Positions 14,152 through 62,445 of a DNA stretch of 64,000 nucleotides are shown here, in pieces. The translations under genes and the position numbers were made by a program. The stretch is from Anolis carolinensis (lineage: Eukaryota). Every line of letters begins with the position of its first letter. Position 1 is the first letter of the stretch. The DNA lies in the NCBI RefSeq assembly GCF_035594765.1, contig NC_085842.1, forward strand, positions 169,149,036 through 169,213,035, read 5' to 3'. A model generated the notes under the pieces. The model worked only from the letters and a program-made list of their open reading frames with translations, was not told the origin of the DNA and ran no database searches.

Positions 14152-15132
14152 GTGAGACCAAAGCATCCAAAAGGGAATGGGAGCTGGGTTGGTGTGACTG
14201 GATGCTCCTTTAGAGGGGAGAGAGCAGCTGGCTAAAGGGGAAAAGAAAGAAATGGTGTGGTGGGAAGGATGTTTCGATAGCTTTAGTATAACAACCCCCA
14301 AGCATCGTTTCTAATGCTCAACCCTCATTGCTCAAAAGAAGCAGTGGCAGAGCCAGAGGCTGGGTGATAACTTTATCAGGTGAGGGAGAAGGGCCCCACA
14401 TGATGCTATTAAAAGAGATGTATTAGAAGAACCCAGGGTGTCTCTTTTAAAGTCGTGCATGAATTGACTGAACTCCGTAACAGCCTGCCACAGATTATGA
14501 GAGTGCTGCCACACCCACTCTTGACTCTTCAACTCCGTTGCTCACCCAGTCTGGTACCCACTTTGTCCAAACCCTTCTACCAAATCTTCCTGGTATTTTG
14601 CATGCTCATTTTATTCCCTCTTCATTCCCAACAGCCCCACATTGCCCTACCAGCTAGCCTTCCTGCTCTCCCTCTCAGATCTTTCCACCATCACACCCCT
14701 TTGCTTTCTTTATTCATACTGTCCAGTAGAAGAAAGCAATTTCTTTTGTCCTGTATTTGGTGCCGATTTAGGTACAAAGGGCACTTGTGTAACTACTTAC
14801 AAATGACCGGGTGGGGGGGGGGAGGGTGATGTCTCATTAAGAACGTTACCACAGGCCAACTCCTCTTCTTTCTCCCTCCTCCACAAACACCCTTCTCCAC
14901 TCCTGCCAATTTTGCTCTCTCTGCTATGAGGGTGGGTGGTTTGCAAAACAAGATGCCTTGTGCTACTTACATAGTTAAGTAACTGGATCAATGAAGCACT
15001 GAGTCCAAAGGGCATCAGAGATAGAGAGCAAACCACAGGCCTGTTAGATAATGCTTCGGAAACTGATACATAAGTGATCTTCTGAGAATTGTACCTTTCT
15101 TTCCTGGCTCTCTTTTTGCATAATAATTGCAA

Positions 15133-18334: not shown

Positions 18335-18537
18335 NNNNNNNNNNNNNNNNNNNNNNNNNNNNNNNNNNNNNNNNNNNNNNNNNNNNNNNNNNNNNNNNNN
18401 NNNNNNNNNNNNNNNNNNNNNNNNNNNNNNNNNNNNNNNNNNNNNNNNNNNNNNNNNNNNNNNNNNNNNNNNNNNNNNNNNNNNNNNNNNNNNNNNNNNN
18501 NNNNNNNNNNNNNNNNNNNNNNNNNNNNNNNNNNNNN
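18335..18537. other. Assembly gap
   Basis: Run of N. Confidence 1.
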
Positions 18538-21251: not shown

Positions 21252-21881
21252 TGTACTTAGGATAATATCCACATTTCTCAGGTGGAAAAGGGTTTCAAGT
21301 GGAAAAGGTTTAAGAAGCCCTGCTGTAATTAATAAATGCAAAGCTGCTGAGGTGACACACGATATTGCAAAGTATTATTTTTAATGCATTAATTTCATTT
21401 CCAGTGGTTCTCAACCTGTGGGTCCCCAGGTGTTTTGGCCTACAACTCCCAGAAATCCCAGCCATTTTACCAGTTGTTAGGATTTCTGGGAGTAGAAGGC
21501 CAAAACATCTGGGGACCCAAACGTTGAGAACCACTGCGGACCTAAACATTATGTGATGGATCTAGATGTGTGTAAGCTGAAAAGCTGGTATAGTATAGTG
21601 GTCTGAGTGCTGGACTAAGGATCTGGGAAACCAGAGTGAGAATCCTCATTCAGCCATGGAAGCCCATTGGATCACTCTGGGCAAGTCATTACTCTCTCCA
21701 CTCAGAGGCATGGCAAGCCACCTCTGAAGATCTTGTGAAAGATTCACCTTAAAGATGCCAGAAGCAATGAATAAGCTGATAATGTTTTTCTCCATTAATT
21801 TGCTCAACCTCCCTTCTCCTATGAACTGTCTCTCCACCACGCAACATGTGGCTAAGTTCCTGTGTAACTTCTGCCTTGCAG

Positions 21882-22043
21882 TCATTGCCACCATGCGTGA
21901 CCTGCGCAAGAAAGACAAACTGGAGGCAGCTGCAGGGGACACGCTCAACAAGACTCTCACCATCCAGCGCCTTGACGTCTGCAATGACGAGTCTGTAACT
22001 GAATGTATCAACAGCCTTCCTGGAAAACAGCTGGATGTGCTAG
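21882..22043 (+). CDS. RDH8: RDH8 exon 2 (VIATMRDLRKKDKLE...LDVCNDESV...QLDVL)
   Basis: Acceptor TTGCAG at 21876-21881, donor GTAGGT at 22044; phase 1/1, in frame with exon 1; lies inside ORF 21755..22075. Confidence 0.95.
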
Positions 22044-22384
22044 GTAGGTACTTTGGACGGGTGAGCAAAATGTAACTCCCCAAGCTGTTGCCAAACTTAT
22101 TTTATTATTATTATTTATTTATTTACCTCATTTGTATCACACGCCTTTCTCCACCCCAAAGGGGACTCAAGGCAGCATACACAGGCACTTATTCAGGACT
22201 ACAAAACACATATTAAACATACATTTAAAATATTGACAAAATTAAAATTCATACAATAACATTAAAAACCAGACAATCAATTAAAATCACGCTGTCCCAA
22301 AAATCATAGTCTAAATTTCAGCCTCCACTGCTCCAGGCTAAGCCTTCATGGAAGCTGCAGTTCAACCCGTTCGGGTTTTCTGTG

Positions 22385-23615
22385 TGTGTGTCAGGAGCGA
22401 CTTGAGAAACTGCAAGTCGCTTCTGGTGTCAGAGAATTGGCTGCCTGCAAGGATATTGCCCAGGGGACTGTCAAGATGTGGGAGAAGGGATTTTTTTCAT
22501 TAATTATATTATTATATGTTTTATATCCACTGCCACCAGTTGTGGAGATCTCAGGCAAAGGGGAATTTCTTTTTCAACCTTTTCTTTCTCTTCTTTTAAT
22601 TCTCTTTAGATGGTAGTGTTACTTAAGTTTAGGATATGTGTGACAGAGGCTTGGATGTTGAAAGATAACAAGTTTATTTCAGGCACAGAGCTTGGTTACA
22701 ATAATTTCTTTAAGGCACTTAAATAACTGTTACAAATAGATGTTGAGGTGTTCCAACTTCCACAATACTTTCTCCTCTTCAATCAAAACTATTAACTGAT
22801 CTCTTGGATCTACTGGGATTACTTCCCCTTACTTCTCAGCCTCTACACATAACCCTAAACAAGTCACCCAACTTGCTTAGTCTGGCACTATTAGAGGTCT
22901 GCTTCCCTGGTTTCCCTAATCTGGAACCAGTGTCTTTCCCCTGTGACTAAAAATCACAGACTACCTAAAATAAGTCACCTTATTTTAGAATTGACTCAAA
23001 TTCCCTCATTTGAGCCACCCTGATCCTCCAACTGAGAATCAGTCTTCACTGTAATTTCACCATTACAGACTAAACTGTTTTTAAAACATTCCCTCCTTTT
23101 TTCCTTCAATTGGCGGTTAGCTCTGCCTCCGTTGCTATGGCAACCTGCCTCAGAATGCTAAGCTGGTTACCTTCCCCCACGTATTGTTAACTCTAATACT
23201 TACCCATTTTAAACATAGCCAAACATGACTTTTAAAACACAATTAAACATGACATCTATAAATAAAAACACACTTCTTTACAAGGACGCCCGGATGTTTG
23301 ATGTTTTACCATCCTGTGGGAGGCTTCTTTCCGCACAGGGAGCTGGAGCTGACAGAGCAAGCTCATCCACACTACCCCTGGGTTCGATTCGGCAACCTTC
23401 AGGTCAGGAACCCAACCTTCAAGTCAGCAGTTCTGCTGGCACAAGGGTTTAGCCCAGTGGTTCTCAACCTGTGGGCCCCCAGATGTTTTGGCCTACAACT
23501 CCCATAAATCCCAGCCAGTTTGCCAGCTGTTAGGATTTCTGGGAGTTGACGGCCAAAACATCTGGGGACCCACAGATTGAGAACCCTGGTTTAATACATT
23601 GTGCCACCAGGGGTT
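22385..23615 (-). mobile_element. tRNA-derived SINE (family B, unnamed) interrupted by an LTR-like insertion and a hAT MITE
   Basis: The two halves join as ...CCCAGGGGAC|GCCCGGATG, as in the copies at 34396-34660 and 63185-63461. Confidence 0.75.
22469..23282. mobile_element. Probable solo LTR (814 bp)
   Basis: TG...CA termini; 5-bp TSD GGGAC/AGGAC; cleanly splits a SINE. Confidence 0.75.
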
Positions 23616-24927
23616 CCCAGTTCATCTGTTGCAATGCACTTTGGTTACCCTTGTATTTTAGCCAGAGACCTCACTGCTCCTATCTATCAGAGTATAGGGT
23701 ATACTTCACTTCACTTTATTTCTTAATTAGTCGCTCTCCACCAGAGTGCTCGAGTGACTTACAATTTAAAATATCATTCCACAATATAAAAACATTCAAC
23801 ATAAAAACATTCAACAGTGACTATTTGGCAAATTAGATCTGATTTACTTAAATGCACAACCAAACAGCCAAGTCTTGAGCAAGTCTATACAATGGTTGAT
23901 GCTGGGGGTGAGAATAATGTAATAGAGGACACTCTTTACTCTATTAAGTATGTGCTTTGTAAATCATCTACTGCAGCAAGGCTAATACAACAACTCTATT
24001 ACCTAACTGAACTTTAAGTACTAGGTAATTCAGAATACGCATACATTTTGATAACATTAACAGGTTTCATAAGCAGGGTTCTCTACACCTTCTAAGAGGC
24101 TCTTAATTCAAATCTGCAACAGACTTTTTCTGTGCCTAAGGAAACACACCAAAGCATGGGAAACCTAATCTATATACAAAAAGAAGGAAGTGGATAGTCA
24201 CTTCATTCTACCAAAACAAACACTTTATTCGCCTTTTAAAATCCTACTCTTCCTCCAAGGAGTATCAAGCGAAATACAAAGGTCTCCTCTCCCCGACATT
24301 ATCTTCATAGCAGTCTATAAAGCGGCTTGGGCCAAGAAAAAGTGAAAAGGAGAGAAATAGCAGACCCAGGTTACCCAGCAAGGTTTGTAGCTGAGTAAGG
24401 ACTTCAGGCAAAGTCTCTTGAATTCAGTCCCAACCTTAATTACTGAACCAGACTGACTTTTAAAAATACAACAAAAACTAGCAAAAGACGTGCTAAAATT
24501 CACCATTGGAAGAAGGTAGTGGATAATCAGGTAAAAAAGGAGCAAGTCCATTAAAAAGAATCTCTGCACCCTTTTTGTTCAAACCAGAATCTATGAGTCA
24601 GAAAGTGGACATTTTCCACATCCCCAGTTGCAAGAATTATGTTCCTTCTAATCCCTGATATTTTTCTTGGAGTATGTTTGAGGAGGAACACCAGTGTGTA
24701 ACGGAAGCAGGGCTCACATGCTCAAAGCTACAGGTCCTTCTTTACCACCCTGCATGAACTTACGGTACCTGGTTCCCATTCTTTTGGGTGATTTTGTCTT
24801 AAGCAAGCAAGACCTATTGACTTTACAAAAGACCCCCTTCTTGAGAAAATAAAAAACAAAACACCAAAACATAGTTCAAAACAAGTCCATGAAATCTGGA
24901 CTTTTGTTGTGGGCTACACTGTAAGTA

Positions 24928-25238
24928 GGAGCCCCCGGTAGCACAGCAGATTAAACAGCTCAGCTGATAAACTTTCTGACTGAAAAGTTGGTGGTTCGAA
25001 TCCAGGGAGCAGAGGGAGCTCCTGCTCTTAGCCCCAGCTTCTGCCAACCTAGCAGTTCGAAAACATGCAAATGTGAGTAGATAAACAGGTACTGCTCCGG
25101 TGGGAAGGCAACATCACTCCATGCAGTCATGCTGACCACATGACTTTGGCTCTGTGGCTTAGAAATGGAGCTGAGTACCAACCCCCAGAGCTGGATATGA
25201 CTACATTTAATGACAGGGAAAAACCTTTACCTTTACTT
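24928..25238 (+). mobile_element. Sauria SINE
   Basis: Family match. Confidence 0.88.
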
Positions 25239-25578
25239 ACACTGTAAACATTTTTATGATGAGCACCAGAACATCAAACTTTGCCATGACATAACTGAAG
25301 AATACCGAACTGAAAACTTACTGGGACATAGGATTGGAGCGCAAGGACATCTCAGTGGGCAAACTTGGGTTATTTACCGTACTCTCAGACTAACCTACCT
25401 TAAAGGGTGCTTTGAGGTTATAAAGAATCAATTCACACATTCCATAAACAAACAGATATGAATCCCCCCAGACCAGGAACTACCGTACTTTTACATGAGA
25501 ATGTACTGGGGTGGGAGGAAGGTTGACTTTATGCATTCACTTATATCGGTATATATTATTCACTTGCTTTCATTTATA

Positions 25579-25655
25579 CAGGGTGTTTGAAAAAGAACTC
25601 CCTAGTTTTAATGTGTTTTAACTTAAAACTAGGGAGTTCTTTTTCAAACACCCTG
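25579..25655. mobile_element. 77-bp mariner-type hairpin MITE
   Basis: Perfect inverted arms CAGGGTGTTTGAAAAAGAACTCCCTAGTTTTAA; TA flanks. Confidence 0.85.
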
Positions 25656-49246: not shown

Positions 49247-51062
49247 GGGTTGCTGTGAGTTTTCTGGGCTGTGTGGCCATGTTCCAGAAGCATTCTCTCC
49301 ACATCTATGGCAGACATCCTCAGAGGTTGTGAGGTCTCTTGGAAACTAAGCAAGTGGGATTTATATATCTGTGGAAGGAGGTTTATATATCTTTGGAGGG
49401 TCCCCAGAACACAGAAATGCTGGACCATTCTAACAACTGCTATGCCAGACTATCCAGAGAAGCCATTGAAATCCATAAGTATGTGGACAATTTCAACAGA
49501 AAGGAGGAAACAATGAAAATGAACAATATCTGGCTACCAGTATTAAAAAAAACCTCTAAAATCAGGACAGTAAATAACACCCTGAAAACAGAGGAAATCC
49601 AGACAAGAAACAATCAGAGCCAGCTAATCACCTCCAGACAAAGGATTCCCCCAGGCAGTAAGCAGCCAGGCCTTGAAGCTGAAGGGCTATTCAATGCTAA
49701 TCAAGGTAGCCAACTGAAACATTCACACCTGCCTCAAACACATGTGTTTTTTCTCTTTCCACAGACATATAAACCCCACTTGACTAGTTTCCAACATGTT
49801 TTGTTACTAGTTAACAAACTAGTAAAATGTGGGCTAGACAAAACTACGGTTAGGTGGATCTGTAATTGGCTAAGCGAACGAACCCAAAGGGTGCTCACCA
49901 ATGCGTCGTCTTCATCATGGAAAGAAGTGACAAGTGGAGTGCCGCAGGGCTCCGTCCTGGGCCCGGTTCTGTTCAACATCTTTATTAACGACTTAGACGA
50001 AGGGTTAGAAGGCACGATCATCAAGTTTGCAGATGACACCAAACTCGGAGGGATAGCTAACACTCCAGAAGACAGGAGCAGAATTCAAAATGATCTTGAC
50101 AGACTAGAGAGATGGGCCGAAACTAACAAAATGAAGTTCAACAGGGACAAATGCAAGATACTTCACTTCGGCAGAAAAAATGGAAATCAAAGATACAGAA
50201 TGGGGGACGCCTGGCTTGACAGCAGTGTGTGCGAAAAAGATCTTGGAGTCCTCGTGGACAACAAGTTAAACATGAGCCTACAATGTGATGCGGCAGCTAA
50301 AAAAGCCAATGGGATTTTGGCCTGCATCAATAGGGGAATAACGTCTAGATCCAGGGAAGTCATGCTCCCCCTCTATTCTGCCTTGGTCAGACCACACCTG
50401 GAATACTGTGTCCAGTTTTGGGCACCGCAGATGAAGGGAGATGCTGACAAGCTGGAAAGCGTCCAGAGGAGGGCAACTAAAATGATTAAGGGTCTGGAGA
50501 ACAAGCCCTATGAGGAGAGGCTTAAAGAGCTGGGCATGTTTAGCCTGCAGAAGAGAAGGCTGAGAGGAGACATGATAGCCATGTACAAATATGTGAGGGG
50601 AAGTCATAGGGAGGAGGGAGCAAGCTTATTTTCTGCTGCCCTGCAGACTAGGACACGGAACAATGGCTTCAAACTACAGGAAAGGAGATTCCACCTGAAC
50701 ATCAGGAAGAACTTCCTCACTGTGAGGGCTGTTCGGCAGTGGAACTCTCTCCCCCGGGCCGTGGTGGAGGCTCCTTCTTTGGAGGCTTTTAAGCAGAGGC
50801 TGGATGGCCATCTGTCGGGGGTGCTTTGAATGCGATTTCCTGCTTCTTAGCGGGGGGTTGGACTAGATGGCCCTTGAGGTCTCTTCCAACTCTACTATTC
50901 TATGATTCTATGATTCTATGATTCTATGCCTCCCAACCTCTGAAGTTACCTGCCATAGATGCAGGTGAAATGTCAGGAAATAATGCTTCTGGAACATGGC
51001 TATACAGCCCAGAAAACTCACAGCAACCCACTGATTCCGGCCATGAAAGTCTTTAACAACAC
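49247..51062. mobile_element. Penelope-like fragment (GIY-YIG C-terminal remnant, inverted termini) interrupted by CR1
   Basis: [21 protein letters not shown] remnant; the terminal repeat resumes after the CR1 tail. Confidence 0.75.
49797..50928 (+). mobile_element. 5'-truncated CR1 LINE, uninterrupted RT C-terminal half
   Basis: [15 protein letters not shown] and KDLGV motifs; (ATTCTATG)x4 tail. Confidence 0.95.
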
Positions 51063-53305: not shown

Positions 53306-53701
<396 letters not shown>

Positions 53702-54124: not shown

Positions 54125-54535
<411 letters not shown>

Positions 54536-54592
54536 GGTGAAGCCTTGATCCCCGATTAAATAAAAATCCCCTCGCTGAACGTTGAACCCAAA

Positions 54593-54633
54593 GGCTCTTT
54601 TCAGAGCCACCCACACTTTCAAAGAAAGAGCTG
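54593..54633 (+). terminator. H2A histone stem-loop (GGCTCTTTTCAGAGCC-ACCCA) plus HDE (AAAGAGCTG)
   Basis: Perfect consensus at 54593-54608; HDE at about 54625-54633. Confidence 0.97.
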
Positions 54634-58856: not shown

Positions 58857-59182
58857 AAGGTAAAGGTTTCTCCTGACGTTAAGTCCTGTTGTGTCCAACT
58901 CTGGGGGTTGGTGCTCATCTCCATTTCTAAGCCGAAGAGCTAGAGTTGTCCATAGACACCTCCAAGCTCATGTGGCCGGCATGACTGCATGGAGCGCAGT
59001 TACCTTCCTGCCGGAGCGGTACGTATTCATCTACTCACATTTGCATGTTTTTGAACTGCTAGGTTGGCAGAAGCTGGAGCTAACAGTGGGCGCTCACTCT
59101 GCTCCCCGGATTTGTAGTTGTGACCTTTCGGTCCGCAAGTTCAGCAACTCAGCGCTTTAACACTATGCCATCGGGGGCTCCA
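58857..59182 (-). mobile_element. Sauria SINE
   Basis: Family match. Confidence 0.88.
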
Positions 59183-59478
59183 AAGTAAGTCTGTGTTTAT
59201 TTAATATCTAAGAAAGAAATCCAGCAAGTACAAAAATAACTATGACTCTCCCCCAGTTGTTTTGCCCATCTTCAAATGCAGTCTCCATCAATACTTTAAA
59301 AACTTTGCTTAGAAACATTAGCTGAAGATAGTTGAAGCAGAGCAAGAAAGGGTGCAGCGGGTCTTTACCACTTCACTGTTAATCTCAGAAGACATTTCTT
59401 GAAAAAAGGAAATATTCATTTTGAATCAATCTTTGGTTTTTTCCTTCTAGTACAAAACATTCTGATAACATTCAAAGA

Positions 59479-59700
59479 GTGTTGTCGAAGGCTTTCATGG
59501 CCAAGATCAGTGGATTGCTGTGAGTTTTCAGGGGTGTATGGCTATGTTCCAGAAGCATTCTCTCTTGACGTTTCGCCCACATCTATGGCAGGCATCCTCA
59601 CAACCTCTGAGGATGCCTGTCATAGATGTGGGTGAAACATCAGGAGAGAATGCTTCTGGAACAATTCCATACAGGCCTGAAAACTCACATCAACCCAACA
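59479..59700. mobile_element. Palindromic Penelope-derived element with back-to-back hammerhead-like motifs
   Basis: Inverted terminal repeat copies joined at about 59600. Confidence 0.75.
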
Positions 59701-60271
59701 TTCAAAGAAGATGCATCTTTGTTCCTGCAAAGATGTTTGTGAGAATGTTCACATTTGTGCCAAGGCGTGCAGCGTTTCCTCTAAGTTTTCTTGATACAAT
59801 TCTGCGTGAAACAGGCCCAAGATACAGATGCAGATTGTCTGGTCAGCAGCTCGACAGATTCCTAAATATTAAAGAAAGTGTTATTAAAATGCCATTCTAT
59901 TCATCATTAAAACACCATGATCTCTTAAGATTTCTCTAGATATGTTCACAAACCTGGACCTTTGTGGATGCTAGCTTCTGCAAGGCAATAGCACATGGTC
60001 CCTGGACCATCACCAAAGTTTGTCCCAGCTTCCTACAAATCAAGAACACAGATTATTATTTTTGTGTTTAATTTTGAACTAGGTTATAGTGTTCTCTGCT
60101 GTGAAGGACAGTCCAACATGGGTTGCCTCTACACTGCTAGAGCTGAAAGTTTGCCTGCAGTAAGTTTACCCACATTTCATGGAAGGAGGCCTATTAGCAA
60201 CAGAACAAGTTGAGTGTATTTTTTTTGTATCCTAGCCTTCTTAATTATTGTTTAAACTGAATAAAGCCTAT

Positions 60272-61140
60272 GTGTTGTCGAAAGCTTTCATGGCAGAAAT
60301 CACTGGGTTGCTGTGAGTTTTCCAGGCTGTATGACCATGTTCTAGAAGCATTTTCTCCTGATGTTTTGCCCACATTTATGACAGGCACACTCAGAGGTTG
60401 TGAGATCCGTTGGAAACTAGTCAAGTGATGTTTAGATATCTGTGGAGGGTCCAAAGTGGGAGAAAGAACTCTTGTCTGTTGGAGACAAGTGTGAATGTTT
60501 CAATTAATCACATTGATTAGCATTGAAAATCCTTGGACCTTCAAAGCATGGCTACTTCCTGCCTGGGGAAATCCTTTGTTGGGAGGTATTAGCTGGTCTT
60601 GATTGTTTCCTGTCTGGAATTCCCGTCTTCTGAGTGTTGTTCTTTATTTACTGTCCTGATTTTAGAGGGTTTTTTTTTTAAATACTGGTAGTTAGATTTT
60701 GTACATTTTCATGGTTTCCTCCTTTCTGCTGAAATTGCCCACATGCTTGTGAATTTCAATGGCTTCTCTGTGTAGTCTGACATGGTGTTGTTAAAGTGGT
60801 CCAATCATTTCTGTTTTCTCAAATAATATGCTCCTAACACCTAGCTAACACTTCCCAACAAAGGATTCCACCAACCAGGAAGCAGCCAGACTTTGAAGCG
60901 GAAAGGGCATTAAATGCTAATCAAGGTAGCCAATGGTAACATTCGCATTTGCCTCCAACAGACAAAAATTATTTCTCCCACACTGGACATTATTCCACAG
61001 ATATATGAACCTCCCTTGCCTAGTTCGCAACAGACCTCACAACCTCTGAAGATGCCTGCCATAGATGTGGGTGAAACATCAGAAGAGCATGCTTCTGGAA
61101 CATGGCTATACAGCCTAAAAAACTCACAGCAACCCAGTGA
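60272..61140. mobile_element. Penelope-like element with inverted halves and a GIY-YIG remnant on -
   Basis: Minus strand encodes a [11 protein letters not shown]-like remnant; terminal repeats inverted. Confidence 0.75.
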
Positions 61141-61885
61141 ATAAAACTTTCTTGCAAATATATATGTCGATGGGAAGGATGCACCACAGTACTACAGATC
61201 ATACTTCCAAGAGTACATCTACACTGTAGAAGTAACACAGTTTGGTACCACTTATTATTTACTTCACTTGTATACTGCATGGGGGACTCAAAGCGGTTTC
61301 CAAACATATTATTGGCAAAATTCATTGCCTGCATAACAATAATAAAATACAACTACAGTAGAGTCTCACTTATCCAAGTTTCTGGATTATCCAAGCCATT
61401 TTTGTAGTCAACGTTTTCAATATATTGTTATATTTTGGTGCTAAATTCATAAATACAGTAATTACTACATAACATTACTGCGTATTGAACTTCTTTTTCT
61501 GTCAAATTTGTTATATAACATGTTTTGGTGCTTAATTTGTAAAATCATAACCTAATTTGATGTTTAATAGGCTTTTCCTTAATCCCTCCTTGTTATCCAA
61601 GATATTCGCTTATCCAAGCGTCTGCCGGCCCGTTTAGCTTGGATAAGTGAGACTCTACTGTATTGATTGAAATCATAAAAACACAATAATATCAACATAA
61701 AAACATATTAAACATTAAAATCATGAACTACCACGGCTCCAGGTGGTGGAATCCATGGGTGAGGCACTGGCACTCTTTGGCCTTGGAAAACTCCAGCTCT
61801 TAGGGTCCCATAGCCTTGCTCCATGGTAGTTCAAGTGGTATCAAACCGGTTCACTCTATAGTATAGATGCCGCCCTAGTACCCTA

Positions 61886-62269
61886 CTAACCTCTGGATTT
61901 GAAATTCTTATGCTTGGGCAAAATGGCAGCTTGGACGTTGGGCAGGACCCCTCCTTGGGCGATGGTGACTTTGCCCAGGACTTTGTTGATCTCCTGGTCG
62001 AGGCGGATGGCCACCATCAAGTGGCGGGGGGTGATGCGGTTCCTCTGGGCGTCCCGGGCTATGTTGCCGGCCAGCTCCAGGATCTCAGCCGTCAGATACT
62101 CCAGCACCGCGGCCAGGTAAACCGAGGCACCGGCTCCCACCCTTTTGGCGTAGTTCCCTTTCCGAAGGAAACGATGTATGCGGGCAACGGGGAAACGGAG
62201 CCCAGCCCGGGAGGAACGGGACTGGGAGGTGGCCCGGGCTTTGCCGCCCTGCTTCCCGTGCCCAGACAT
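61886..62269 (-). CDS. Divergent histone H2A (127 aa), candidate variant
   Basis: Intact ORF, colinear with the neighbouring H2A; 25 substitutions in residues 1-118 and a different C-terminal tail ([10 protein letters not shown]); a pseudogene is not excluded. Confidence 0.85.
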
Positions 62270-62334
62270 GCCTTTCTGCTTTGGCTCTTCTTCCCCGCTG
62301 AGAAAAGCAAGCCAACTCTCGGCCCTGCAGCGGG

Positions 62335-62445
62335 CGCTTCTGATTGGTTGTGCATTCTGATGCTACCATGGGAACCAGAGAAACTTGAGACTGGCTGCCC
62401 AATCAGAGGAAGAGAGGCTGATTTCCTTCCCGGAAGTGTCAGAAG
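62335..62445 (-). promoter_or_regulatory. Promoter of the divergent H2A
   Basis: CCAAT on - at 62343-62347; X-box-like GTTCCCATGGTAGC at 62362-62375; CCAAT on + at 62399-62403; CCGGAAGTG / TTCCCGGAA at 62427-62438; no TATA box. Confidence 0.6.

Follow-up and report, generated by a model that had tools for sequence, protein, structure and literature searches.

A young, spliced histone H2A variant that probably arose in place from a clustered canonical gene in anole lizards

The 64,000-nucleotide (nt) stretch of Anolis carolinensis DNA analyzed here (the window) holds a variant H2A gene that belongs to a small histone cluster with the order RDH-type gene, H4, H2B, H2A, H3, variant H2A, a further H2A (with I87V and K99G), and H2B; the position of the variant is called the slot herein. 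Short-chain dehydrogenase exons (RDH8/HSD17B1-like; 21646-38132, plus strand) flank the cluster and are a neighbor in other squamate loci as well. The stem-loop RF00032 of the canonical H2A lies at 54588-54633, and all four canonical histone neighbors in the window carry this element, while the same search returned no RF00032 match behind the variant gene. The features of the locus are as follows.

62335-62437, minus strand: TATA-less promoter remnant, as aligned with A. sagrei and with five slot promoters from outside the anoles
61891-62384, minus strand: exon 1, from RNA-type contigs, with coding sequence 62269-61891 (Met to the first base of Gly126)
60033-61890, minus strand: intron 1 (1858 nt, GT-AG), filled with repeats and holding the stop codon of the earlier open reading frame
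61789-61870, no strand assigned: short multi-copy repeat, ~20 nt past the ancestral stop, at the stem-loop position of other squamates
59954-60032, minus strand: exon 2 (79 nt), with the tail GSWDKLW, the stop TGA (60012-60010), and 56 nt of 3′ untranslated region (UTR)
59862-59953, minus strand: intron 2 (92 nt, GT-AG), inside the 3′ UTR
59179-59861, minus strand: exon 3 (3′ UTR), with contigs unbroken to 59658 and others covering 59562-59179
59217-59339, minus strand: BH1-containing remnant of a decayed BCL2A1-like gene, in the 3′ UTR (Pfam PF00452, E = 1.3e-5)
54146-54535, plus strand: canonical H2A, the inverted partner, which is homogenized with the slot copy in other squamates

A first-pass annotation had described the variant as an ATG-to-stop open reading frame (ORF) at 62269-61886 (minus strand) with a new tail. 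The ORF was confirmed in the sequence, but its 127 amino acids are the intron-retained reading of a gene that RNA-type contigs divide into three exons. The TAG that closed it (61888-61886) is intronic, the intron starting at 61890 with the donor G/GTTAGT, and both database protein P0006 and the spliced contigs of runs X1 and X5 run on into exon 2 at 60032; two introns and the true tail GSWDKLW had been overlooked. P0006 (XP_062827127.1, A. carolinensis, automatically named “late histone H2A.2.2”) matches the ORF at 100%, is 133 amino acids long, and ends in FKSRGSWDKLW; the exons were read one by one, and the 133-residue sequence is that of the database record. The two joints (61891 to 60032 and 59954 to 59861), both GT-AG, were identical in contigs of runs X1 and X5, which come from different studies and were classed as RNA-type by presumption (sample labels are coded). 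A unique intron bin had zero contig depth in these runs, and two further runs gave unspliced pieces over the gene that may represent DNA. The RNA-type contigs begin at 62384 and 62359 on the 5′ side and contain four coding single-nucleotide polymorphisms (SNPs), two of them missense (R24C and A40V alleles). A putative poly(A) site is marked by an AATAAA at 59201 in exon 3, conserved in A. sagrei, and by contigs that stop at 59179, a coordinate where a repeat edge also falls. The junction in the 3′ UTR lies 56 nt past the stop in A. carolinensis and 55 nt past it in A. sagrei, a borderline distance under the rule for nonsense-mediated decay (NMD).

The promoter keeps two CCAAT boxes, a proximal one at 62343-62347 and a distal one at 62399-62403, that are homologous to those of the slot H2A promoter of other squamates, and in the same alignment its TATA box is replaced; the retention of both boxes argues that the variant arose in place. 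An ETS-like CCGGAAGT lies at 62430-62437. An RFX-like box was also considered as evidence of germ-line control, but it is degraded in A. sagrei and was therefore given no weight.

In 14 non-anole squamate assemblies (covering snakes, geckos, lacertids, and further groups, with most species assigned provisionally from their accessions), the slot holds an H2A with 0 to 2 core changes, a TATA box, and a stem-loop. In all seven testable non-anole species, the slot H2A and its inverted partner are only 0 to 13 of 357 nt apart and group by species, which points to gene conversion between the two; in the anoles they are 66 and 82 nt apart. The nonsynonymous distance (dN) between variant and canonical copy is 0.13, against 0.000 to 0.006 in the seven testable non-anole pairs, a divergence beyond chance. 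Converted inverted H2A pairs were seen despite differing flanks (loci L003/L010/L006/L011-L012/L004-L022/L005-L023/L053). Snake-type loci (L015, L016, L018, L019, and L027) have a slot H2A of 127 amino acids, shorter by two residues, with the loop variant TTAT in its stem-loop, and two gecko-type loci (L005 4532-5218 and L012 3106-3810) hold an intronless HAD-family hydrolase ORF between H4 and H2B.

The splice donor of intron 1 has a visible precursor. Slot genes end in AAA GGC AAG TGA in 7 of the 13 cases listed, a string with a GC-type donor inside it, whose counterpart in A. sagrei is AGA GGT AAG TGG; the donor was made out of the end of the ancestral gene, its two final codons and the stop (G127-K128-stop). 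Gene models of canonical slot H2A in two other lizards (L024 14946-18298 and L053 10001-58339), known from annotation alone, are spliced GC-AG from this last-codon position to unrelated exons, with tails ending in GWF and GRVSYKEELW. A GC donor in the last codons is thus a possible recurrent source of alternative H2A tails. The gecko isoform ending in EELW was rejected as a homolog of the anole tail, because its exon is 48 kb away and has no DNA similarity. On the 3′ side, A. sagrei has a short repeat at the place matching 61789-61870. A broken BCL2A1-like copy (59480-59215, minus strand, in the window; 14285-14626 in locus L001), with the BH1 NWGR motif, frameshifts, and repeat insertions, lies between the variant and H3. 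It was found only in the two anole loci, supplies the 3′ UTR and the AATAAA of the variant in both, and its A. sagrei piece has BCL2A1 as best PDB matches. The variant is accordingly a gene with neither TATA box nor stem-loop that is spliced via its own last codons into 3′ exons ending in a dead BCL2A1-like copy with an AATAAA. At 0.51 to 0.67, the synonymous distance (dS) between variant and partner is about threefold that of the split between the two anoles, and the variant may therefore be older than the genus Anolis.

A. sagrei carries an intact variant ortholog in the same syntenic position, with the intron 1 donor and acceptor as in A. carolinensis and matching sites for intron 2, between which lie 1156 nt (92 nt in A. 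carolinensis). The ortholog has no TATA box at its promoter and no stem-loop on its 3′ side, and its tail reads FKSRGSWD(Q/K)LW. Between the anoles, dS of the variant (0.19) equals that of the neighboring H2A, H2B, and H3 (0.20 to 0.22), for which dN is 0. Omega for the variant was 0.35 (CI, 0.19 to 0.67; p = 0.0025 against neutrality), and a five-sequence branch model put it at 0.27 for the tips (p = 0.0003) and at 0.30 for the stem. The stem value was not different from the tips, and a burst of positive selection at the origin of the variant is unsupported in this model. The variant no longer tracks its inverted partner and evolves with a dN/dS of ~0.3. A transcribed pseudogene that gives no stable protein would account for the borderline NMD architecture, the repeat-filled introns, and 3′ exons lying in a dead gene, but we consider it very improbable, since neutrality is rejected and neither anole has a stop or frameshift in the variant.

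Constraint on the variant is nevertheless loose: exon 1 shows 19 amino-acid differences between the two species, two A. sagrei records (P0015 and P0122) differ at 8 residues, which reflects strong polymorphism or assembly error, and two of the SNPs in A. carolinensis are missense. In the coding stretch of exon 2, the anoles differ at 2 of 23 nt; the stretch is too short to be told apart from the UTR next to it. Seventeen derived residues are identical in both anoles, and five more sites are changed in both (22 shared core changes); R3H, E41K, and P48S, all within the 25 substitutions counted by the annotation, are private to A. carolinensis.

Against the canonical H2A at 54146, the variant aligns without gaps over residues 1 to 118 with 25 substitutions (79% identity), and every change listed earlier is present. 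E56, E61, E64, D90, and E92 are indeed kept in this alignment, but the helix alpha2, described as conserved, is kept only in part (P48S and A69I are changed). E91Q had been placed merely at the edge of the acidic patch; it lies within the patch, because E91 belongs to the residues altered in a mutant that is standard for this patch (PMC3929782). Changes are densest and most unusual in loop 2, alpha3/alphaC, and the docking domain. Buried positions are changed conservatively (L85V, L93I, L96V, I111V, and L115I), and Q24R, N89L, E91Q, L93I, L96V, I111V, and L115I are absent from all 103 diverged H2A rows. A W-x-x-L core is found, as a pattern only, in the tail of all three anole records; a role of WDKL as an LIR was dropped, there being nothing beyond the pattern match. 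An AlphaFold monomer of the variant had a pLDDT of 45, which is uninformative and too poor for a fold search.

These data bear on whether the gene is simply a redundant H2A under relaxed selection, in which a repeat destroyed the stem-loop and which survives as a low-level spliced replacement histone. Selection would then keep the protein just foldable and harmless, and the lost sites and the tail would have no function of their own. An omega of ~0.3 on stem and tips with no burst, the high polymorphism, a junction at the NMD limit, an exon 2 that is inseparable from UTR, and a lysine loss that is not significantly in excess (4 of 10 lysines against 18 of 108 other sites; p = 0.09) would all be expected. 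However, the frame, the start, the splice sites of the coding intron, and the 17 derived residues have been kept across a dS of 0.2 in both lineages. Nor are the changed sites generally variable ones, given a mean variability of 0.18 against 0.13 (p = 0.11), and seven changes common to both anoles cluster in residues 79 to 97, where the two species differ at just two. We regard relaxed selection as a somewhat unlikely explanation that still deserves weight.

The annotation had also held that the protein has lost the major modification sites. K13, K15, K119, and T120 are lost in both anoles, whereas the R3H change is private, and the claim was overstated in that K118, K120, K5, K9, S1, and Q104 remain (K36, K95, and K99 are kept as well). 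Neither anole has a lysine between residues 10 and 35, so that, by published rules on target position for RNF168 ubiquitylation (PMC7235047), RNF168 would have no target at the required position and the K15 mark read by 53BP1 could not form on the variant. The predicted refractoriness to RNF168 follows directly from these two protein sequences. Escape from PRC1, predicted along with it, is open to doubt, since both anoles have K118 and K120, for whose compensating role the annotation itself had allowed, and PRC1 is described as acting on K118/119.

An alternative reading of these losses is a variant whose main role is to make chromatin blind to ubiquitin and kinase signaling (no RNF168/53BP1, weak PRC1, no Bub1) with nucleosome stability unchanged; one such setting could be meiosis, in which end joining driven by 53BP1 is undesirable. 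The loss of K13, K15, K119, and T120 in both species would fit, as would an intact alpha1-extension helix and an H2A acidic patch with five of its six residues unchanged, on which RNF168 could dock with no target to modify. Yet K118 and K120 remain, the shared changes are for the most part structural, the marks could still be borne by a canonical H2A of the same nucleosome, and lysine loss is unenriched, which leaves selection targeted at modification sites unsupported. We therefore consider this explanation improbable. Loop 2 contacts DNA and the docking domain contacts H3-H4, and for this reason looser variant nucleosomes, as judged from established nucleosome structure, are the most likely effect.

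Taken together, the variant is probably a young, replication-independent, nucleosome-loosening, germ-line-biased H2A. Its mRNA would be polyadenylated and made outside S phase, and the protein is predicted to pair with H2B via the conserved alpha2 core and to enter nucleosomes. There, changes in loop 2 (N73, K74, and T76), alpha3/alphaC, and the docking domain (Q84M, L85V, N89L, E91Q, L93I, L96V, I111V, V114A, and L115I for the latter two regions) would loosen contacts with DNA and H3-H4. Variant nucleosomes would carry no RNF168 ubiquitin at K13/K15 and no Bub1 phosphate at T120, and PRC1 marking at K118 or K120 would probably still be possible. If the variant has a function, a germ-line setting is slightly favored by analogy with H2A.R and the short H2As (PMC5880237).

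We give a rough probability of 0.6 to the reading that the gene encodes a functional, replication-independent variant and originated within its slot, from the canonical H2A there, in an ancestor of the two anoles. Function is supported by the spliced contigs, the intact ortholog, an omega of 0.35, and the 17 shared derived residues; origin in place is supported by the canonical slot gene in 14 assemblies, the promoter homology, and the origin of the donor. Precedents are spliced forms of clustered histones (PMC5100578) and the testis-restricted H2A.R (PMC5880237). The restriction of the data to two species, the weak constraint, the NMD-edge junction, and the lack of any sign of positive selection on the stem weaken it.

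Profile matches above cut-off to PF00125 (histone fold) and PF16211 (H2A C-terminal domain) place the protein in the H2A family, and the 60 top-ranking PDB matches comprise canonical H2A, H2A.J, and H2AX. The canonical clustered H2A (the slot gene named “type 2-C-like” by NCBI) is its direct ancestor, with the same slot, orientation, and CCAAT boxes, but the variant differs from it in lacking the TATA box and stem-loop, in its two introns, 25 substitutions, and new tail, in being unhomogenized, and in a dN/dS of ~0.3 against 0. A stem-loop-less, spliced mRNA and purifying selection on a distinct protein in two species are instead features of a replication-independent variant. As the annotation had argued, it falls outside H2A.X, H2A.Z, macroH2A, and the short H2As; by gene structure, core sequence, and locus, it also falls outside H2A.R and H2A.J. 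Its true end, GSWDKLW, has no SQ(E/D)-hydrophobic motif as in H2A.X, and the lack of a macro domain and descent from the slot gene separate it from macroH2A and H2A.Z. H2A.R of monotremes and marsupials resembles it in being full-length, lineage-specific, and diverged, with an acidic-patch change and a kept docking domain, but H2A.R is by description intronless, mammal-only, and testis-restricted (PMC5880237), whereas the anole gene has introns and its slot holds a canonical gene in other squamates. The short H2As (H2A.B, L, P, and Q) share its fast evolution, and H2A.B is no RNF168 substrate (PMC7235047); they have a truncated C terminus and are intronless and located on the eutherian X chromosome (PMC5880237), in contrast to an untruncated, intron-containing, noneutherian protein of 133 residues with a full docking domain, most of the acidic patch, and 10 lysines. 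H2A.J is likewise stem-loop-less, derived from canonical H2A, and changed in its tail (PMC9526256), but has a nearly canonical core and lies beside H4C16 near WBP11/SMCO3/ART4; the anole variant, with its introns and its 22 shared core changes, sits close to an RDH-type gene. In mammals, the clustered genes HIST1H2AC and HIST1H2BC/BD/BK have spliced, polyadenylated isoforms that also use a 3′-end donor to reach downstream exons and bypass stem-loop processing (PMC5100578). Those genes have their donor in the 3′ UTR and keep both a canonical protein and the stem-loop, whereas the anole gene has its donor in the coding end, no stem-loop, and a diverged protein. H2B.K and H2B.N (PMC8857922) are also intron-containing vertebrate histone variants, but they belong to the H2B family, have an intron that splits the histone fold, and are far older.

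The proposal of a lineage-specific, undescribed H2A variant had been tied to expression, orthologs in related lizards, dN/dS, and class membership. It survives on all four counts (spliced RNA-type contigs exist, the A. sagrei copy is intact and syntenic, dN/dS is below 1, and the known classes do not include it), its documented range being two anoles. Protein searches with the whole ORF, residues 70 to 133, and residues 9 to 48 returned only two Anolis proteins as true relatives; since such searches depend on 5-mers in common and canonical H2A dominates their output, absence in other iguanians is not implied. Look-ups via neighboring histones returned no non-anole pleurodont, and locus L008, which we take for an acrodont, ends 8 kb beyond H3, short of the slot. 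A published survey reported no novel H2A variants in birds and leaves lizards unmentioned (PMC5880237). Our literature search, with most subscription journals outside its reach, returned no paper on a squamate-specific H2A variant.

Neighboring lizard genomes thus show stepwise how a spliced, fast-evolving, yet selected H2A variant can arise. Ancient genes are the usual basis for inferring how variants escape the homogenization of canonical histone clusters. In this case, 14 relatives still display the ancestral state, and the individual steps are datable across anoles and other iguanians. The variant is also a natural full-length H2A with K13/K15, K119, and T120 gone but most of the acidic patch kept, in a species, A. 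sagrei, in which gene editing has been done. A more ambitious account would join a birth readable from genomes (a latent GC donor made constitutive, a stem-loop lost to a repeat, exons from a dead BCL2A1, and escape from gene conversion) to loose germ-line nucleosomes blind to RNF168/53BP1 and a partner-binding aromatic tail (WDKLW), which would make the variant convergent with the H2A.R and short H2As of mammals; it is unlikely to hold in full.

Three further observations concern the window. The H2B beside the canonical H2A (53306-53686) carries D2 in place of E2, and a protein of precisely this sequence turned up in no species but the two anoles. Stretches of N occupy 18335-18537 and 29151-29304. 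Within the histone cluster, an ORF of 496 amino acids (49339-50829, plus strand) resembles by eye, in its second half, the reverse transcriptase of a CR1-type LINE.
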